Below are positions 20,219-39,000 of a stretch of DNA of 64,000 nt, one piece after another. The DNA comes from Phaeosaccion multiseriatum (lineage: Eukaryota; Protista; Ochrophyta, other classes), in the NCBI GenBank assembly GCA_965112735.1, contig OZ218952.1:2542001-2606000 (forward strand), written 5' to 3'. Position 1 is the first letter of the stretch, and the number at the start of each line of letters is the position of its first letter. The notes beneath the pieces are model-generated. The model was not told where the DNA came from. It saw nothing but the letters and a program-made list of their open reading frames with translations, and searched no databases. Made by a program: the position numbers and the translations under genes.

Positions 20219-20468
20219 CCTTATCGATGTGCCTTTCTCGAGGTAGCGCCCAGCAACGACTCAAGCAATATCAGGAAGGAGTCGACATGACTCTTCTCCA
20301 CACTCTAAGGCCTCACAACGCTTTGAAGGCTCCCCTCTAAAAGAGAGCGGAGAGTTGCTTTTGGCAATTGCTTTTGGTGGAATGGGGAGAAGTGAATTGT
20401 TTAGGGTTGGGCCGACACCCCCTTGGGGGGGGGCGAAAGAGCAGCAAGAGACAAAGAGAAAAAAAGAA

Positions 20469-21398
20469 ATGGCAGAGTTCGAGGGAGCTGCTGCGGCTGG
20501 GTTGGTCAACGATGACGTAGAGAGGGAGGAGCAGCAGCCAGAGGAGGAGGAGGAAGAGGAGGAGGAGGGGGAGGAGGAGGAAGAGGGAGAGGCCGAGGTC
20601 GACTACCCATTGAAAGTCATCTACTGTGGAGGTGAGTTTGGTGGAGGTTCTCGGCACAATGCATGCTCTGACGAGCTGATGACGCGCACTCAGGGCGTGC
20701 TTAACTGTGAGCAGCAGCAGCTATTCTTAACCACCCTTCTCGGTGATAATACCCTTTCCATCCCTCTCCCTTTCTCGGCCCCTTGTACCTCGCCCCCACG
20801 GCCCTCCCCGCTGCACAACATGACAGTATGCGGTCTTCCACCAGAGTATTGCTCTTACGGCTCCTCCGAGGCAGAGTGCAAGGCTTGGGCAGAGGCCAAT
20901 TGCCCCGATGAATTGAAGGCTTTAGAGGATAGGTTAGCGGCAGTCAGCGTGAGCAGCGGCGGCGGTGGCAAAAAAGGCAGCAAAAGCAAAGGAACGGGGG
21001 GTGACACAGCGGGCGCGGATGGTGAGGGGGAGGAGGAGGAGGGAGACGGAGGAGGAGACGAGGACAAGAAGGAGAGAAAGAAGAAGAAAAAGAAGAGCTC
21101 AAAGGAAAAGAAGAGCTCCTCTGGAGAGGTGAAGGGCGAGACGAGGGTGTGGATCGCGCGCGTGAACCGCAATAAGAGAAAATACGTGACGGTGGTGGGC
21201 GGCATGGATACCGTACCTGGCGTTAAGCTCAAAGACGCCGCCAAGGCCATGGGGAAGCACTTTGCTTGCGGTGCGAGCGTCAACAAGGGCGCCACTGCGG
21301 AGGAGATTATCATTCAGGGCGATGTCGTCATGGACCTGCCGGATTGGCTGGCGGCGACATTTAATGTGGGGGCCGATAAGATTTTCCTCCAGAGCTGA
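20469..21398 (+). CDS. DENR: Density-regulated protein DENR/Tma22 (SUI1 domain); intron 20632-20826
   Basis: YPLKVIYCG|VCGLPPEYCSYG zinc motif; RNKRKYVTVVGG...FACGASV...EIIIQGDV SUI1 domain. Confidence 0.95.
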   Translation: MAEFEGAAAAGLVNDDVEREEQQPEEEEEEEEEGEEEEEGEAEVDYPLKVIYCGGEFGGGSRHNACSDELMTRTQGVLNCEQQQLFLTTLLGDNTLSIPLPFSAPCTSPPRPSPLHNMTVCGLPPEYCSYGSSEAECKAWAEANCPDELKALEDRLAAVSVSSGGGGKKGSKSKGTGGDTAGADGEGEEEEGDGGGDEDKKERKKKKKKSSKEKKSSSGEVKGETRVWIARVNRNKRKYVTVVGGMDTVPGVKLKDAAKAMGKHFACGASVNKGATAEEIIIQGDVVMDLPDWLAATFNVGADKIFLQS

Positions 21399-26280: not shown

Positions 26281-27685
26281 GTTGGGCGAGCGAATGCCTC
26301 CAATGGCTTCAAGCAGGTCTGCAGAGTCAAACAAGAAGCCCAGGTCAGGCCGCCCCTTCCCTGAGGTGCCGCCGCTTCCGGCTGGGAGGGACGAGGACCT
26401 TCCTCCTCCACCTCCCCCTGCCGCTGTGGACGCCTTGGGAGAGCGACCCATGGCGGAGGAAGAGGAGGCGGACGAGATGGATGAGGAGGAAGGGACTGGA
26501 GGGTCACGAAAGCCCCCTTCGTTGCCGTCCAGTCGGTCCTCCACCCTCCTTCTTCGGCGAGCAAAAGGCTGGCCCATTTCCTGCGACATGAGAATCACTT
26601 CGTCGTTGATGCTGCGCTCCCAATCCCTGAGCCGCCGTCGAGAGAGGAGTACAAACAAGGAGAGAGAGAGAGGGGGGGGGGGGTGAAGAACAAGAAGAGC
26701 TTGACAATGAGCGCCTCTTTTGTGGAGGAAGACTTGGGCTGACTGACAACACCACCCCTTATCGGGGCCCAAGGAAGACGGGGTTGAATATTGTCTGATG
26801 ATGTCTGTGACTGGCAGGACAGGCTTCTGACTTGCAGGACACGCTTCTCGGCTTGTCAGTCGCTCGCATTGAAAGCTTCAGCGGGGCTGACTGGGGAGGG
26901 GCTCTCCTCCCCGATGGCCCACGCGTTGGATCACCAACCGATGCGAGTCCGCGCATGGAACTGCCCACCCACCTGCAGGCGGCCCTGACGTGGTCGAGAG
27001 GCTCCTGATCGTGTTCCTTGTGGTCCAGCTCCGGATACAAGCAGCGCAGCTCCGCGGGTAGCGCTCCGTTCATGGCCCCGACGCGTTGCTTGGCCTCTGC
27101 TTTGCTGTGCAGCGAAGACAGGAGGCTCAAGAGCTCCTTGTGGTACCCCGACTGGTGCAGCTCCTGCAGGACCATCGCCTCGGCATCTGAGGATCCTCCT
27201 TCTTGCTGTTTCAGCCTGAAGACATTGCGTACGGAGCAGAACAGAGTGACAACAGCAAGGGAGGGGGGGTGGTGGTGGTCTCCTTCTTTTCCTCCTCCTC
27301 CTCCTCCTCCTCCTTCTCCTCAGGGATGTGGTCCTCCTCCTCCATCTTCTCCTCCTCCTCCTCCTTCGCCCCCTCCTCCTCTCACCTTTGCGCCACCCTA
27401 TCCTTGATAAGTGCCGCCATAGCCCAGTACGCTTTGTTGGAATAGAGGGCCTGCTCGATGCGGGCAGCCTTTTCGTCATCGTTGAGGTTCCCAGTGTAGT
27501 CCACTGGACTCACGAAGCTAAGCGAGGGAGAGAAATCCATGAAAAAAAATCACACGGGAAGAGGTGTAGGGGGATGTCCAGGACAAATTAGGTTTACTCC
27601 CTATCTTAAAAAAAAAAATTGTCCTCCTCTGCGGCACTCACTGGGGGCTGTACAGGTGGGGATGGTAGCACTGCTGCTCCGCCAT
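22565..27685 (-). CDS. TBC1D19: TBC1D19-like Rab-GAP (multi-exon; the 3' end may include one more short exon)
   Basis: GLPTALRPRLWRLMLG, DDDMYFPFEEVL, PFRGMVSYAAPLCFLF, RAMYCRYWCKLN, LLLWDRLLGYDSLTLLPVLSAAIFVFR and KVVPLLQSFIF. First exon MAEQQCYHP starts at ATG 27685. Confidence 0.88.
23770..24092. repeat. Intronic ~41-bp minisatellite built from gatggcagtggatg/ggacgggga units
   Basis: Read directly from sequence; the related short motif also appears near 5625-5670 and 43535. Confidence 0.85.
25759..26000. repeat. (GGA)n tract of about 80 units in a TBC1D19 intron
   Basis: Read directly from sequence; shorter GGA tracts at about 24785-24890, 40008-40090 and 44572-44635. Confidence 0.95.
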
Positions 27686-27914
27686 TGTAGATGATGAGAC
27701 GAAGAAGTGTCACCGAGGCAGAGACAGCCGCGTTGCCTTTATTGTGGCCACCATTTGGCTTATCCTCGAGGCAATCGGTGAGGAGAGTGCGTTTTCGTTC
27801 GCGTGTTGGTGATCGATTGGGTCACAGATTACAAACCTCGAACACACTTCTTTTTCCTCCATTTTTCTCTTTTTCCGACTTCCCACTCTCTCTCTGGTTC
27901 AATATCCCTCTACC

Positions 27915-30900
27915 ATGGTTCAAGCTCTTGGACCTTCTCGAAAGAGGAGTCGACAAGGTGCGCTATGCGGGAGCAGAAGCAGCAGCAGAGGCAGAACTCG
28001 AATGCCATCATGTTTCTTAGTCGTGCTAGTCGGCCTGGTATGCCGCTGCAAGGCACTTTCTCCGACCCAAGTGCAGACACCGCAGTACACCGATACTGGT
28101 GCTGCTGCTGTCACAAGCGCCAGCTTTCAGTCGAGGTGAGTGTTGTAGAGGAAGGGGGAAGGGGAATTCCGTTTAAGGGGTTTCAAAAGACACTACCTCA
28201 CGCGTACAGTTGTCCTTCGCTGCCGCTTGCTATTGTTCTCCAGTGATGGGGACGACGAGCCAAGCACAAATAGAGGACATACCGTGGTGACCAGGGGGCA
28301 GGATTGGATACTGGAGCATACCCCAACCGCGTCGGGAGCGGCGGGAGTGGCGGGAGGAGCGGGAGGAGCGGGCGCAGCTTCAGCAGCAGGGGTCGTAGAG
28401 CCCCTGGATAGAGAAGTTGCTGCTTACCGCCGCCCCCACGGGCTCGATGCACTGATGGGTAGACACAGCAGTAGCAACAGCAGTCAGAACCTGAGCAGGG
28501 GCCTTCAATTCTCGGGCGGGACGGCGGCACCAGAGAGGCTCTGGTCGTTCCTCCGGACGGAGGACTATCGACCCAAACATCGGCACGCCCTGGTCTTCCT
28601 CCTCGTCGGAGCAGGAGAGGGAGGAGGAGGAGGAGGAGGAGGAGGAGGAGGAGGAGGAGGGAAGGATGCAGATGGTGACTCTGGGACCACCAGCGACGGC
28701 TCGAGCGACTTCGGAGAGAGGAAGGAGGGTGCTGGTGCTGCAAGTAGTGGCGTGAACGCGAGCCTCCCGTCACTTCTGACCGCGATACATAGCGTCGTGG
28801 TTGCTGACCTCCTCTGTGACTTGGACTTTATCGTCCTTACTGACTCGGACGGACACGCGGAGGTAGCCGAGGCGCTGCAGGCTATGCCCATGGGTGAGTG
28901 CTTTGGCGCCTTTGCCGTTCGCCTCAAGCTGGAGACGTTCCGGATAGGAGGAGGAGGAGGAGGAGAAGGAGGAGGAATTGAAGTGGGGCCGAGGGTGGGG
29001 CCGGGCTGCACAGAGGAGGGAAGCTTCTTGTACCTGGCCCTCGCCAAGCTCTTGCCCACTGGCATGACGGAGTACGAAACGGTCACCTTTCAGGACCTGG
29101 ACGTGGTGGTGTTACAGCCTGCACGAGGAGGCGATGGTCCTACAAGCACGGGTATAGCGGGCATGTCGAACGGCGTTCTCATGAACCTAAGGGAAGGGCT
29201 GCATTTCTGGGCGGTGGGGGGCACCATATCACCCATCAATGCAGGCTACTTCACCCTGCGGCCCTCCCGCGACCTGTTCGATGACTACGTCAGGGCGCTG
29301 GAGCTGGGCTTCAATGTGGAGAGAGGGTGGCTGGACAGAGGCCCCGTTCCAAAGTGGGCGACAAAAACCTTTATGCAGGGGGCGGAGGCGGCCATTCCGG
29401 AGGCCATGCTTCCGTATAGAGACACGCCAGATGGAGGCAGCTTGCCTTGGGTGTTCCACGGAGCCTGTTCGGACCAGGGGCTGCTTACTGCCCTCTTCTG
29501 GCCGACAACAGACAGTGGTGGATGGGCGGCCGCAGCCGCAGATGCCGAAGGAGGAGGAGGACGAGGAGGAGGGAAAGTTTGGTCGGTGGAAATGCTGGGG
29601 GGGCGGACAGGCATCGTCGTGCCCCAGCGAGTGGGGTTTATGCACTACTACGGCGCTCTGAGACCTTGGGTTTTGTCGAGCGAGTGGTATGTGGCACTGG
29701 CTAAGCGGAGCAAGCGCATACAGAACTTTCGCCCATGGTGAGTGAGTGAGTGAGTGAGTGAGTGAGTGAGTGAGTGAGTGAGTGAGTGAGTGAGTGAGTG
29801 AGTGAATGAGTGAGTGAGTGAGTGAGTGATGGCGAGGGAGAAGCAGATCCATCCGAGAGAGAGGCCGGGGGTTATGTTGGTCCTTTCCTGATGCTGCTTG
29901 CGACTCCTTCTGTATTTGGAAGGTCACCTCCCACACTCCCCGCCTCCCTGGCACTACTTTCTGTCCTAACACCTTGACCAAATCTTGAAAAACCCACCCA
30001 AAACACACACACACATGCACACACACACGCACACACCCCGCCCCTCCTGAACCCAAACAGGTATACGTACTTCTCGGACCTGCTCCGCACGTACCCTGCC
30101 TTACGTCAGTGGCAGTCCTTCCACTCCCTCTCTCACAGCGTTTACATGGACGAAGACGTACGGCCCAACCGCTCTATTCCTTTGGCCCTGACCTTGCCAT
30201 TTCCCGCCCTCGCGGACTCGAAGAACCCCTGCCTAGAGGTGGCGGGTAAGGTGGTGGCCTGTGTCCCTGCCTTCATCATGTTGGGGGTGCAAAAGTCCGG
30301 CACGACGGACATTAATGAGCGCATCACCAAGCACCCGGCTGTGGTGGAGACGGTCAAGAAAGAGGTACACTTTTGGTCGAGGAGGGCGAGGCGAGAGGAG
30401 CACTTGTACTTTGACCGCTACCTGAGCAACTTCTCCCCGCTTGTCGAGGCTCTGAATGAGCAAGGCCCCTCCACCGAGAATGGTCGTTGGCCGGACTTGA
30501 TCTCTGGCGACGCCTCTGCAACAACGCTGTACCTTCATCGGCCATTCTACGGTCCCACTTCGCGAGAGGCCTTCGCCACTCCCAGGCTGGTGGCTGCCAA
30601 CATCCCTTCTGCCAAGTACATTGCCATCTTCCGCAACCCGGTGGATAGGCTGCTGTCTGAGTTTCACTACTTTTGGGTGAGAAGGAGAAGGGAAGGAAGG
30701 AAGGAAGGAAGGAAGGAAGGAAGGAAGGAAGGAAGGAAGGAAGTGCGCATCGGTCCTGGGCGGGGTGCGGCGGCGGCGGCAGCTTGGTTTTACCCTGCTT
30801 TGACCTTGTGCTACCCCCCCGCCCGACGTCCCTACCCTTCTGAGTTCTGTCTCTCTCTCTCTGTGTGTGTCTCTCTTGTCGCCTCTGCTTCTCCCTCCCC

Positions 30901-31870
30901 TCGCCCTCTGCTCAGTCGCGTGCCCTCTTTCCTCTTGGTCTCCCTCCTTCCCTGTGGTCACACCGCTGTGGAGGCCTGCGTTTGGCGTCCTCTTACCCAC
31001 TGAACATGGAAGCTTGTCTACAAGTGTGTGTGTCTGTGTTTCGACTTTTACTCTCAACACTCACTCTCCCGTATCCTTGTTGCATTGGCCGTCGCGCTCC
31101 CCTGCCCCTCTCCCTCTCCCTCCCTCCTTCCTGGGATGGGGAATGGGACGCATGCACGCACGCGCGCACACACACCCACACAAACACACACGCACACACA
31201 CACTCACTCACACATACACACACACATACACACACAGATCGCCGAGAAGGTGCTGTGGGATAAGGAGGACCCCAAACAAGCCGTGCAAGGGGCCCGTCTC
31301 CAATGCAACGACCTCCGAACGCGAGGCATCCAAAATCACATTGCCAAGAAGGCAGGCTTTGGGCCCACGCCGGAGCTGTTCGACGCCCTTGTGGACCGTA
31401 AGCTTGAGTGGTGGGGAGAATGCTCCCTGGCCAAGGGAGCCGAGGAGTGTGCCTTCTTGCCGGAGTTTGCGGACGATCCCAGCTTCGTGTGCCCTCAGTT
31501 GGTGATTGCGATTGGTATGTATGCCATCTTTGCCAAAGAATGGCTCAAGGTCGTGCCCCGAGAGCGTATTTTGTTTATGCATGCCGAGGCTTTTAAGGAG
31601 GATATGAAGGGGAGTCTGCGGTCGGTGTTTGGGTTTCTGGAGCTGGCTGAGCCCTCCGAAAGTGAGTGGGAGGTGGTGTTGCATTCGGACGTTGGGAACA
31701 GTCATAGCTATAAGGACATTTTGGGCATTGATACCGTCATGCTGCCCAAGACAAGGGTCAAGCTTGAGAAGCTGTACGCCCCCTACAATCGGCAGCTGGA
31801 TGCGTATATTGGACAGGAGTTTTCGGCCAGATGGATTTATGTGGACAAGGAGAAAGGCGGAGTAGTGTGA
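27915..31870 (+). CDS. Predicted secretory-pathway fusion protein: GT8-like glycosyltransferase + carbohydrate sulfotransferase (CHST15/HS3ST-like). Exons 27915-28135, 28244-29737, 30061-30676, 31238-31870
   Basis: Basic N-tail followed by hydrophobic FLVVLVGLVC. GT8 motifs: FQDLDVVV, INAGYFTLRPS, SDQGLL, HYYGALRPW. Sulfotransferase motifs: 5'-PSB GVQKSGTT, KKEVHFW, 3'-PB FRNPVDRLLS, IGMYAIFAKEWL. The junction TG|G keeps frame. Confidence 0.8.
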
Positions 31871-32538
31871 GTAGTGGGAAGAATGTGACACACGAACACG
31901 TACACACACACACAGAGAGAGAGAGAGACCAAAAGAACAAAAGAGACAAAATTCTTAGAAATAAATGTATTGGGGAGGAGGCCCAATTGTGCTTATTATT
32001 GCACCAGAGGAGAGGGAATGGTGCAACGGGGACGTAACGGTCCCCTCAATTACATCTTCATCCATCAATCCATCCATCCATCCATACAGCGTGCAACAGA
32101 TTAGACACAAACGCCCCATGATGCCACTCACTGCAGCAAGAGCGCTCCGTAGCGCAGGCTGGTGCTTGACCAACGTAACACCCAAAAGCATCGAGCACAC
32201 ACACTTGTACGCACCGCTTCCCCCCCCCTCTAGGTTTTGCGCAGGCACGTACACGCAGAACCTGCTTCCATCCCACACCCTTGTTGGGCTTTTGAACAAA
32301 TATACCCCTCTTCAGCGTGTTGATTCGGATACATCTCTACACTGTGCGTCCTCGTGGTCTGGGCCTTTCACGTCACTCCCAAGGGAATGTCGTGTAGCGC
32401 GCAGAGCCAGGGCTGATTATCTTCCTGAGCGTTGTTTTTTTCTCTCTCTCTCGTTTGTACGGGCCGTGCGCGTGGTAATCACATACAGACGAGAAGCACA
32501 GTCCTTGATTAGCTTCCCTCCTTCCTTCCATGCTCCCG

Positions 32539-32953
32539 TCACAGCAGCGTGATCATCACGTCGTCGTGCGCGCCCTTGAGCAGCATCTGCCCCTTCCAGT
32601 CAATGGCCCCGCGCTTCCTTGCCGCTTTGAGCGTTCCCACCAGGCTCTCCAGGGTGTCCTGGCATTCCTCCATATCGAATAGCTCCCCAAAACTCACCGT
32701 GACTGGAGAGAGCGATTTCAGGGCGAAGGTGCGTGTGTCAGATAAGACATAGAGAGTAAGGGGGAGACAGAGCGCACAAGAGAGAGAGGGAGAGAGAGAG
32801 AGAGAGAGAGTGCTGTGAGAGAGAGAGTGGGAGAGAGGGGGGGGGGTCGGGAGAGAATTTGAACTGACCTTTGCCATCCTCTCGTGGCTTCCCAATCTTT
32901 TGGAGAAAGCCCTTCAGCAGCTCCACCTCCGCCAGAACATGCGACTCGTCCAT
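32539..32953 (-). CDS. ABRACL: Costars family protein (ABRACL-like); exons 32953-32869 and 32702-32539
   Basis: HVLAEVELL...DGKVTVSFGELF...LVGTLKAARKRGAIDWKGQMLLKGAHDDVMITLL*. Confidence 0.95.
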
Positions 32954-36073: not shown

Positions 36074-39000
36074 GGCAGCTTTGTGCTCTTTGCAGTGGAC
36101 GACATGGTCTTTTTCCGACGCTTTCGACTGCGGTAAGAAGAAAAGCCTCAGGGGAAGAGGAGGAGGAGAGGGAGGAGGAAAGAGGCTCCAAGCTGAGGGT
36201 GGAGGGTCTCGCACCTGTCGTAGCAGGAAGGGATCACATTGGAATGCCGCCTTCTTCGTCGATGGCCGGCCTTCCACTTTGAACCCGGTCGGCTGCTCTC
36301 TCTCTCTCTCTCCCTCTCTCTCTTTTCGCCTCTTCAGCGCATCGACTGACGTTCGCCCCCCCCTCCTTCTTCCTTCACCGTCCCCTCCCCACCTCCCCCC
36401 CCCCTCCCAGCGCGGCAGCTAGTCTGCTCCACTCCCGCCCCGATGTCTTCTCCTTCCACCTCAAGCTGCATCCCGCAGTAACCTTCTGCCACCCCGCCGG
36501 GAGCACCTGCATCGTGCCCACACTGCGCCCCGCCAATGAGACCAATGGGAAGGAAGAGAACGAAGAGAACAAGGAGGGGCCTCCCCAAGGGGGTCACGTC
36601 GGGGGCACTAATGCCCCTGCTGCTGCTTCTCCTGCTGCTTCTCCTGCTGCTGCTACCGACTCGGCCCCCACCCCCAGCATCGAAGTGCTGACTTTCAGCC
36701 GCGCGGAGGGCAGCTTGGACTGGGCCTACCCGTGGGACCTGTCCGGGGGGCTCTACCGCCAGAGCGATGCCAAGCGAGGTTGGTCATACACGTTGTTCCG
36801 CTGTGCTGTCGCGATCTGTTGGAAGAAGGTTGATCTCCTCCTCCTCCTCCTTTGTGTGATGTTGATGTGGTTGTTGTTGATCTTCACATTTGAGTCTCTT
36901 TTCTACAGCCTTGTCATTACACCTCTGCGGCCTCTCATTCGGCCCTCTGCAACAGATGGACACGGCACGATCAGTGCCCCTACTCCTGCATAAGTCCTAA
37001 GTCAATGAAATGCCCCATAAGTCAATAAATTCCCCTGCCCCTGCCTCCCTCCCTCCTCTCTCTCTCCTTCTCTCTCGCCCTCTCATGAGTGGTGCTGGGG
37101 CTGTCTGCTACTCACGGCGGCCGAGCGGTGGCGAACCCCAATCTCCTGGAGCACTTAGGGGATGCGCTGCTCAGTAACACTAAGAAGCGGCAAGGAGCAG
37201 CAGTTGGTGATACAGGAGCAGGCTCATTACCAGCTGAGGGTGAGGGTGTGGTGGCACTGGGGCCGAGGTCGGCATGCCCGGCCTTCCCCGTCATGGCCGT
37301 CGTCGCAGTCAATAGGGTGAGTGAGTGGAGAGGAACGGGAGAGGAGAGGGGGCGGGGGTGACCAAGGCAGGGGTGGGGCCGAGGATAAGGTACCCAGCCG
37401 CGAGGACAGTGGCAAGGAAATTCGTCCCGAGAAGGAGGTTCGGGAATCACATAGAAGTGTGACGCGCAGAAGAGGACGTAGAGGCACAGACACTTCTTCC
37501 TTTCCTCCCTTGCTTTCTTTCCCTCCTTCCTTCCTTGCTTTCTTCGTTGTTGTTTGTTTTTGCCTCGTGTTGGTTACCTTACGCACGCCTTCGCGCCGCT
37601 CCCCACCCACGCCTCCCACCCACGCCACCACACACGCCATCACACAGGTACAAGACACGTACGACACGCCCGTGTACCCTAGCGAGGCTCAGGACGTTGA
37701 CTCCCTCCAGGCAATGCTGTATGAGAAGGGGAGTCCCATAGGGGAAGATGTGGGTCCCGTTCACCATCAGGATCAGGGTCAGGGCCAGTCCGATTCGAGG
37801 TGGCAGGTGAACGCGGAGGCCTATCGCCTTGAGCTCTACAATTCGGTGCACGTGGGGGAGCTGCTGCTAAGTAGAGGGGCGCATGGGGCTGCAGCAGTTG
37901 GTGATGCAGCAGCGGTAGAGGTGTACGACAGTCGCCACCCGAGCAGCGGCAGTGACCTGCTGCTGCAGGAGGAGGGACAGGAGCGGCAGGAGAGACAGCA
38001 GGAGAAGGAGGAGGAAGAGGAGAGGTCTGATGCATCTCGTCCGGAGGTAAAGTTTGGAGGGGCGACCCCACCTCTATATCTCAATCAATCTCTCCCCTCC
38101 AAGTTGCTGATGTGTATCCAATCAACCAAACAACCAACCTACCTACCAACCACCAACCAACCAAGCGAGCAATCCATGTCTCCCCCCCAACAACAGGTGT
38201 CGGTGATTCTCCCTGTGCGCAACGCTGCAGACACGCTGTCTGCTGCCATCCTCAGCATCCTCAGAGAGCAAAGCGCAGTGCGCCTTGAGCTCATCGTCAT
38301 CGACGACGCCAGCACCGACGGTGGCCTGGAGGGGGTGGGGCTACGAGACATTCTTGCGAACGGTGTGTGTGTGTGTTTGGGTGGGTGGGTAAGTGGGTGG
38401 GTGAGAGAGGGAGAGTTGAGTGTGTGCTTGAGTGCGGGAGTGTGTGTGTATGTGTGTCAGTGAGTGTGAGGGTGCGTGCTGGCCTGGTGCAAGTGAGCAA
38501 GAGGAGCTCACCCCCCCCCCCCCCTCCCCCCCCTATTTGTCTCACCTGCCTACCTACCTACCTGCCTACCTATCTACCTGTGCCCGCAAGCAGCCGACAA
38601 CGTTACGGTCATTACCAACACTTCCAGGAAGGGCGTCGCCGCCTGCCTGAATCAGGTGAGTAGGGAGTAGCGTTGGCGTGGGTGTCAGGGAGTTCTCTCT
38701 CTCTCCCCTCTCTCCCCCTTCCTCTCTTACCGCCCTCCTCTCCTCCCCCACTCCCCAGGGCCTCCAAGCGGCGAGGGGAGACCTCGTGGCGAGGATGGAC
38801 GCCGATGACATCTCTGTGCAGGTAGGAAAAGGGGTAGCGGGCTTCTTATTCCTCCTCCTCCTCCTCCTCCTCCTCCTTCTCCTCCTCATTCTTTCTGCGT
38901 CTCGCTCTACTCTGTGAACAGGGGCGTCTCCGGCGGCAGGTGGATATGATGAAGGCCCACCCTACTCTCAACGCGCTCGGCACCTCTGTCGCGGTGTTTT

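Follow-up and report, generated by a model that had tools for sequence, protein, structure and literature searches.

A candidate gene of the ochrophyte Phaeosaccion multiseriatum joining a GT8-like glycosyltransferase to a sulfotransferase

The stretch of DNA analysed here, referred to as the window, comprises 64,000 nucleotides of Phaeosaccion multiseriatum (assembly GCA_965112735.1, contig OZ218952.1, positions 2,542,001 to 2,606,000). Positions 27915-31870 of its + strand probably hold a single four-exon gene for a membrane-anchored enzyme of the secretory pathway, about 987 residues long, in which a GT8 glycosyltransferase domain is followed by a sulfotransferase domain. The original prediction for this locus was a GT8-like domain joined in frame, through an intron, to a sulfotransferase domain that binds 3'-phosphoadenosine 5'-phosphosulfate (PAPS), with one N-terminal anchor in front of both. 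The gene model is derived from the reading of 27500-32300 and from the table of open reading frames (ORFs). Its spliced coding sequence is 2964 nucleotides long (987 codons and the stop), has no internal stops, and the phases fit at all three introns. The donors of introns 1, 2 and 3 are GAG/GTGAGT, TGG/GTGAGT and TGG/GTGAGA, and the acceptors are TCTCCAG/, AAACAG/ and ACACAG/, respectively. Exons 2-4 show coding-like G+C content at the third codon position (GC3). The features of the gene are as follows.

27915-28135, + strand: exon 1; from the start codon on it encodes about 30 residues rich in Arg and Ser and then, at about 28005-28052, a short hydrophobic stretch; donor GAG/GTGAGT.
28136-28243, + strand: intron 1, 108 nucleotides, phase 2, GTGAGT...TCTCCAG; the frame is regained across it.
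28244-29737, + strand: exon 2, a stem of low complexity followed by the complete GT8-like (glycogenin-like) domain, whose loops contain three Gly-rich insertions.
28581-29690, + strand: predicted GT8-like GT-A catalytic domain, residues 113-482 of exon 2, placed by a family hidden Markov model (HMM), profile and structure alignment.
29094-29102, + strand: DxD motif, D284-L-D286 of exon 2, in nearly invariant columns of A1 and A2 (exon 2 with its relatives); aligns to the DAD of glycogenin.
29738-30060, + strand: proposed intron 2, 323 nucleotides, phase 2; (GTGA)23 at the start, and a CA/C-rich, AG-free tract of 138 nucleotides leading up to the ACAG acceptor.
30061-30676, + strand: exon 3, about 65 linker residues, then the first (N-terminal) half of the sulfotransferase domain.
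30062-30145, + strand: 28 linker codons before the first ATG of the sulfotransferase frame, open and coding-like.
30284-30307, + strand: putative 5'-phosphosulfate-binding loop GVQKSGTT, aligned to GVRKGGTR of 3-OST-5.
30362-30364, + strand: Glu of KKEVHFW, aligned to EIHFF of 3-OST-5.
30632-30658, + strand: putative 3'-phosphate-binding motif RNPVDRLLS, with an identical KYIAIFRNPVDR in the bacterial relative on L002.
30677-31237, + strand: intron 3, 561 nucleotides, phase 0; (GGAA)13 at the start, and a (CA)n tract and an AG-free zone of 213 nucleotides at the end.
31238-31870, + strand: exon 4, which completes the sulfotransferase domain with its C-terminal half and holds the stop codon TGA.

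The domain in exon 2 is assigned to GT8 by profile, fold and motifs. The searches and the folding were run exon by exon, and the joined coding sequence was used for length, frame and hydropathy. The direct searches with exon 2 count against the reading: no Pfam family was found at E <= 1 or at E <= 10, so that a match to the GT8 model PF01501 above its gathering score is lacking, and NCBIfam was likewise blank. A word-index protein search with exon 2 was also blank; the words from its Gly runs probably swamped the candidates. A phmmer search of exon 2 against 1.84 billion representatives returned just 11 weak relatives, the best of which has an E of 2e-6. There is no self-match among them, which indicates that the proteins of this genome are not included in that library. 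The relatives P0011 (28 bits), P0012 (25.5) and P0014 (24.8) pass the Pfam GT8 cut-off of 24.3 bits.

Exon 2 contains the motifs DLD (29094-29102), SPINAG, SDQGLL and MHYYGALRPW. The columns that it has in common with its relatives (A1, A2) are the A-x-V-x-L-L of the first strand, a Lys, DxD, SPxNAG, RPS, GW, DW.F.G, DQGLL and H..G..(K/R)P(W/F). The residues looked for at the metal and nucleotide-sugar sites are present: D284/D286, the K of AKL, N332 of NAG, D410/Q411 of DQG, and the H and R of MHYYGALRPW. Compared with solved structures, the profile of A1 finds Gat1 with an E of 1.4e-12 and glycogenin with 4.5e-12. With the profile of A2, the E values are 6.7e-19 for glycogenin-1, where profile positions 14-271 align with chain residues 20-269, and 1.6e-15 for Gat1. 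In a leave-one-out test, the family HMM made without the window sequence gives exon 2 a score of 115 bits, for residues 113-482.

The predicted fold points in the same direction. The first AlphaFold model, built from 11 sequences, is poor, with a predicted local distance difference test score (pLDDT) of 43.6, and its top 37 Foldseek matches are still all glycogenin or Gat1. The second AF2 model, built from 21 sequences, is of moderate confidence (pLDDT 61, predicted template-modelling score 0.68). Its top 41 Foldseek matches are glycogenin or Gat1, followed by XXYLT1, GlyE, LARGE1 and WbbM, all of which are GT8. VIA-align superimposes it on glycogenin with a Z of 15.5 and a root-mean-square deviation of 3.0-3.4 A over 205-212 residues. 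The GT8-like domain with DLD, NAG, DQG and HYYG..RPW, which was predicted originally, is upheld by these profile, fold and motif results, and is too divergent for direct detection by Pfam.

In-frame (GGA)n/(AGG)n microsatellites at 28608-28660, 28946-28976 and about 29550-29575 code for stretches of Gly, at most 14 residues long, which are located in loops of the GT8-like domain. They are absent from the closest relative of the domain, P0001, a fragment of 184 residues on a 1.1-kb contig. The DNA contigs of all four runs that contain the locus break at these repeats of exon 2. In the contig of one of them (X4), one base is missing in the G-run at window position 29597; the other three runs match the window. 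The gap is probably an assembly slip, and the frame of the window keeps DQG and H..RPW together.

One of the 11 relatives of exon 2, P0011, consists of a Sulfotransfer_4 domain (PF17784) followed by a GT8 domain. When searched with P0011, the JGI, ENA, Logan and MMETSP data yielded a protein family built in this way (P0011-P0021, P0028). A complete transcript of the diatom Trieres chinensis (MMETSP0160) belongs to this family, and locus L007 (3001-5553), on a 2.7-Mb ENA contig, is an intron-less ORF of 850 codons with both domains and a long Tyr/Gln/Asp-rich tail. The pairing of a GT8-like domain with a sulfotransferase is not unique to the Phaeosaccion gene, and the existence of this family makes the fusion proposed there more plausible. 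Some members of the family (P0012, of 777 residues, P0002 and P0015) add a thrombospondin type 1 (TSP1) repeat and a weak PLA2G12-like region, and these additions suggest extracellular-matrix proteins as targets or partners.

A heparan-sulfate-3-O-sulfotransferase-like domain is present, one half of it in exon 3 and the other in exon 4. Pfam Sulfotransfer_1 (PF00685; cut-off 22 bits) matches exon 3 with 25.7 bits (profile positions 4-112, E 9e-6) and exon 4 with 22.3 bits (the complementary positions 135-186, E 1e-4). Because intron 3 splits one Sulfotransfer_1 domain between profile positions 112 and 135, it must be spliced out. The sequence matches in the PDB are heparan sulfate 3-O-sulfotransferases, the heparan sulfate N-deacetylase/N-sulfotransferase (NDST) and a bacterial sulfotransferase, all of them weak, with an E of 1e-3 to 1e-5. 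Both PAPS loops, GVQKSGTT and FRNPVDRLLS, and the Glu of KKEVHFW are intact in the alignment to 3-OST-5 and to the bacterial sulfotransferase. This Glu occupies the catalytic-base position of the heparan sulfate 3-O- and N-sulfotransferases. Exon 4 contains a C-terminal LYAPYNRQL...F..RW motif, which is common to the bacterial sulfotransferase of locus L002.

Locus L002 was the only one found in a JGI metagenome scan with exon 3; a word-index protein search with exon 3 gave nothing. It encodes a stand-alone bacterial sulfotransferase of 299 residues with 32% identity and no GT8 domain upstream, and its contig also carries EF-G and other bacterial-type genes. The language-model neighbours of the sulfotransferase half are haptophyte sulfotransferase clusters. 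At 8933-10894 of L002, the stand-alone sulfotransferase comes directly after an ORF that resembles an alpha/beta-hydrolase by eye. If real, this would be the same pairing as the one reported to be clustered or fused in brown algae (PMC6418280); it is possibly a coincidence.

In the joined model, the sole candidate signal or anchor segment is MPSCFLVVLVGLVCRCKAL (residues ~30-48, exon 1), with a hydropathy peak of 1.83, behind the Arg/Ser-rich tail. The remaining hydrophobic peaks fall within the two catalytic domains. The segment would serve as a signal anchor of type II; should translation begin at ATG 28002, the second one, it would instead be a signal peptide. A convincing targeting signal or separate anchor is missing from the sulfotransferase itself; SIPLALTLPFPALA, which follows Met 30146, is only mildly hydrophobic. 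Several parts of the original prediction are confirmed by these results: a PAPS-binding domain is recovered as Sulfotransfer_1 over exons 3 and 4 with intact loops, the join through the intron at 29738-30060 is in frame in an uninterrupted coding sequence, and hydropathy places a single candidate anchor at the N terminus and none convincing in the sulfotransferase exon.

It is rather probable, judging from the base composition and splice signals of the junction, that the GT8 and sulfotransferase domains are fused through the splicing of intron 2 (29738-30060). The phase-2 donor at 29737 and the acceptor at 30061 give a continuous reading frame across the junction, and the donor at 29738, which joins 30061 in frame, is the last usable one before the stop. 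In the frame of exon 3, an in-frame TGA at 29975 is followed by no start codon until ATG 30146, and 30062-30145 is therefore translatable only with a spliced upstream exon. The G+C content of these 84 bases by codon position is 0.46/0.43/0.79, compared with 0.56/0.45/0.74 and 0.60/0.37/0.69 in the sulfotransferase exons. Their GC3 excess, 0.339, is greater than that of all 1619 non-coding windows from the introns and flanks (maximum 0.304). The codon log-odds of the linker, a measure trained on this gene alone and too noisy to be decisive, is -4.4 versus -14 and -13 in the other frames. Introns 2 and 3 are alike in having a 4-nucleotide microsatellite after GTGAG and a CA-rich tail before the acceptor. 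Their acceptors also mark the exact ends of the two AG-free runs, of 138 and 213 nucleotides, that are the longest in the 4.8-kb region.

A number of findings weigh against a single protein. According to the alternative that they favour, the locus contains two adjacent genes on the same strand, one for a secreted GT8-like enzyme ending at TGA 29739-29741 and one for a sulfotransferase starting at ATG 30146 or at the ATG of a mini-exon at 29891. The GT8 domain is complete inside exon 2, and termination at TGA 29739 gives a plausible stand-alone protein. Neither phmmer with exon 2, nor the word searches, nor the metagenome scan with exon 3, nor the contigs of the relatives revealed a relative in which Sulfotransfer_1 comes after GT8. 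A search for a sulfotransferase on the contigs of the closest relatives outside the Sulfotransfer_4-fused clade (L001 and L003-L006) gave none, and the nearest metagenome relative of the sulfotransferase is the stand-alone bacterial enzyme. The genome is compact, with 669 nucleotides between the convergent stop codons downstream, so that an intergenic gap of 404 nucleotides would be tight, yet not impossible. The segment SIPLALTLPFPALA could act as a weak signal. The four runs containing the locus come from one sample and are DNA-like, with the introns covered, no joints and no RNA run among them. The overlap of the stop TGA 29739 with a perfect GTGAGT donor was discarded as evidence for splicing, since both arise from the (GTGA)n repeat. 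An argument from poly(A) signals (TGTA-like motifs) was also set aside, as a reference set was lacking. The mini-exon would correspond to a small ORF in intron 2 (29891-29922, MLLATPSVFG...). Its weak donor, GTCACC at 29923, could be joined in frame to 30061, which would give the sulfotransferase a short hydrophobic start of its own; the composition of this ORF is not coding-like.

The two-gene arrangement is nevertheless unlikely. It leaves the coding-like 30062-30145 unreachable from any start codon, unless an upstream exon is supplied. The GC3 of 29822-29974 in the exon-3 frame is low (~0.41, counted from the sequence), and the GTCACC donor of the mini-exon is poor. A 3' untranslated region, a promoter and a 5' untranslated region would all have to fit into the 404 nucleotides, ~120 of which are microsatellite, and the sulfotransferase would be left without a convincing targeting signal. 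The single polypeptide of the original prediction is the most likely reading in view of the coding-like linker, the upstream stop without a start and the AG-free zone; neither RNA nor an orthologue with the same arrangement was found. Quite improbable is a real fusion in which only one domain is catalytic and the other is a glycan- or nucleotide-binding module, or a gene that is a decaying, unexpressed copy: the strong divergence, the missing direct Pfam GT8 match, Sulfotransfer_1 scores barely over the cut-off, the long Gly-rich insertions in the GT8 loops and the non-acidic residue that the GT8-like family has in A2 at the position of Asp159 of glycogenin are in its favour, but neither domain has lost any of the motif residues that were checked (GT8: K, DxD, N, DQ, H; sulfotransferase: K, E, R, S), and the frame is open over 2964 nucleotides with coding-like GC3 in exons 2-4.

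In the fused enzyme, a short cytosolic tail would be followed by the N-terminal anchor, a disordered stem, the glycogenin-like GT8 domain, the linker of ~65 residues and the 3-OST-like domain. The splicing of intron 2 would put both domains on one chain, and the protein would be of type II, with the catalytic domains in the Golgi lumen. GT8 enzymes are retaining glycosyltransferases. The GT8 domain of the fused enzyme would likewise transfer an alpha-linked sugar from a UDP-sugar with the help of a divalent metal. The tethered sulfotransferase, with PAPS as the donor, would then sulfate that sugar or a neighbour on the same growing sulfated glycan. The original prediction had likewise proposed one Golgi enzyme with both activities, a reading that is still an inference.

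The relationship of the Phaeosaccion gene to the Sulfotransfer_4-fused family was examined in a tree, in which the GT8 domain of the window has the fragment P0001 as its partner and lies outside the group containing all the Sulfotransfer_4-fused proteins. The supports are 91/60 and 93/86 on long branches, neither fork reaching the strong-support threshold of the tool. The HMM score of exon 2 is 46 bits against the Sulfotransfer_4-fused subset and 130 bits against the remaining relatives. Because its GT8 domain is outside the fused clade both in the tree and by these scores, the window fusion is considered separate from the P0011 group. The gene also differs from that group in the reverse order of its domains and in its PF00685-type sulfotransferase. 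It is probably the result of a second, independent joining of this GT8-like clade to a sulfotransferase. The original prediction had further stated that no characterised enzyme with such an architecture was known to its author. This claim holds in the literature searches, which gave no account of a GT8-sulfotransferase enzyme and in which the nearest published cases are a fusion in the brown alga Nemacystus (PMC6418280) and NDST (PMC10864358), but it needs the addition that uncharacterised proteins with Sulfotransfer_4 and GT8-like domains in the reverse order exist in public data.

A broader, tentative proposal is that ochrophytes may have joined glycosyltransferases to sulfotransferases repeatedly and independently, giving rise to 'add-and-sulfate' Golgi enzymes. 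For one GT8-like clade this would have happened two or more times, with either domain in front and with sulfotransferases of two families. The gene in the window would be a lineage-specific example, the two halves of which name each other's substrates. To our knowledge, almost none of the enzymes that build or sulfate the extracellular polysaccharides of algae have been assigned. A natural fusion serves as a 'Rosetta stone' that shows which sulfotransferase acts together with a given glycosyltransferase clade, and it offers a single protein to express and assay. The two probably independent pairings of one GT8-like clade with sulfotransferases, one in this gene and the other in the diatom transcript and the metagenomes, strengthen the functional link. 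If the proposal is true, it would open a direct way, the first of its kind, to match a transferase to its sulfotransferase in the synthesis of algal sulfated glycans. Its practical value hinges on the transcript being truly fused.

The neighbours of the gene are the following. A DENR/SUI1 translation factor gene is located upstream (20355-21395, + strand). A Costars-domain exon (32539-32895, - strand) converges on the 3' end of the gene, and the 669 nucleotides mentioned above are the distance from stop to stop. About 5.5 kb downstream, an ORF with a Glycos_transf_2 match (37321-38460, + strand; E 2.9e-6) is another possible glycan-synthesis gene.

The predicted protein can be compared with several known systems. 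Glycogenin and Gat1 (PDB 6eql, 3v90, 6mw5) share with its first domain the GT-A fold, with a Z of 15.5 over ~205 of 224-260 residues, and the DxD, N(A/S)G, DQG and H..KPW motifs. The sequence identity is only 17-20%, and the window domain has large Gly-rich loop insertions and the GW and DW motifs specific to its protist clade. Glycogenin and Gat1 are cytosolic, whereas the window protein is predicted to be membrane-anchored, luminal and fused to a sulfotransferase. The Sulfotransfer_4-fused proteins have a GT8-like domain of the same protist clade, with SPxNAG, GW, DW.F.G, DQGLL and H..G..KP, but their domain order is reversed and their sulfotransferase is of another family (PF17784). In the brown alga Nemacystus decipiens, a sulfotransferase gene is reported to be fused to its neighbour, an alpha/beta-hydrolase gene of a presumed sulfated-fucan pathway (PMC6418280). 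The partner there is a hydrolase rather than a glycosyltransferase, and that fusion is backed by reverse-transcription PCR.

The second domain shares with the sulfotransferase domains of the 3-OSTs and NDST the K-x-G-T-T and R-x-P-x-x-R-x-x-S motifs, the Glu of E-x-H-F and the C-terminal Y-x-P-x-N...F..W. The matches are weak, and the nearest relative found is the stand-alone bacterial sulfotransferase with 32% identity. NDST is itself a bifunctional enzyme, the heparan sulfate N-deacetylase/N-sulfotransferase (PMC10864358). Its partner domain is a deacetylase rather than a glycosyltransferase, and its homology with the window protein is limited to the sulfotransferase domains. Like the protein predicted here, however, NDST is a type II Golgi protein with a glycan-modifying domain in front of a C-terminal domain of the Sulfotransfer_1 type, and it follows the same logic of coupled modification that is proposed for the Phaeosaccion enzyme.

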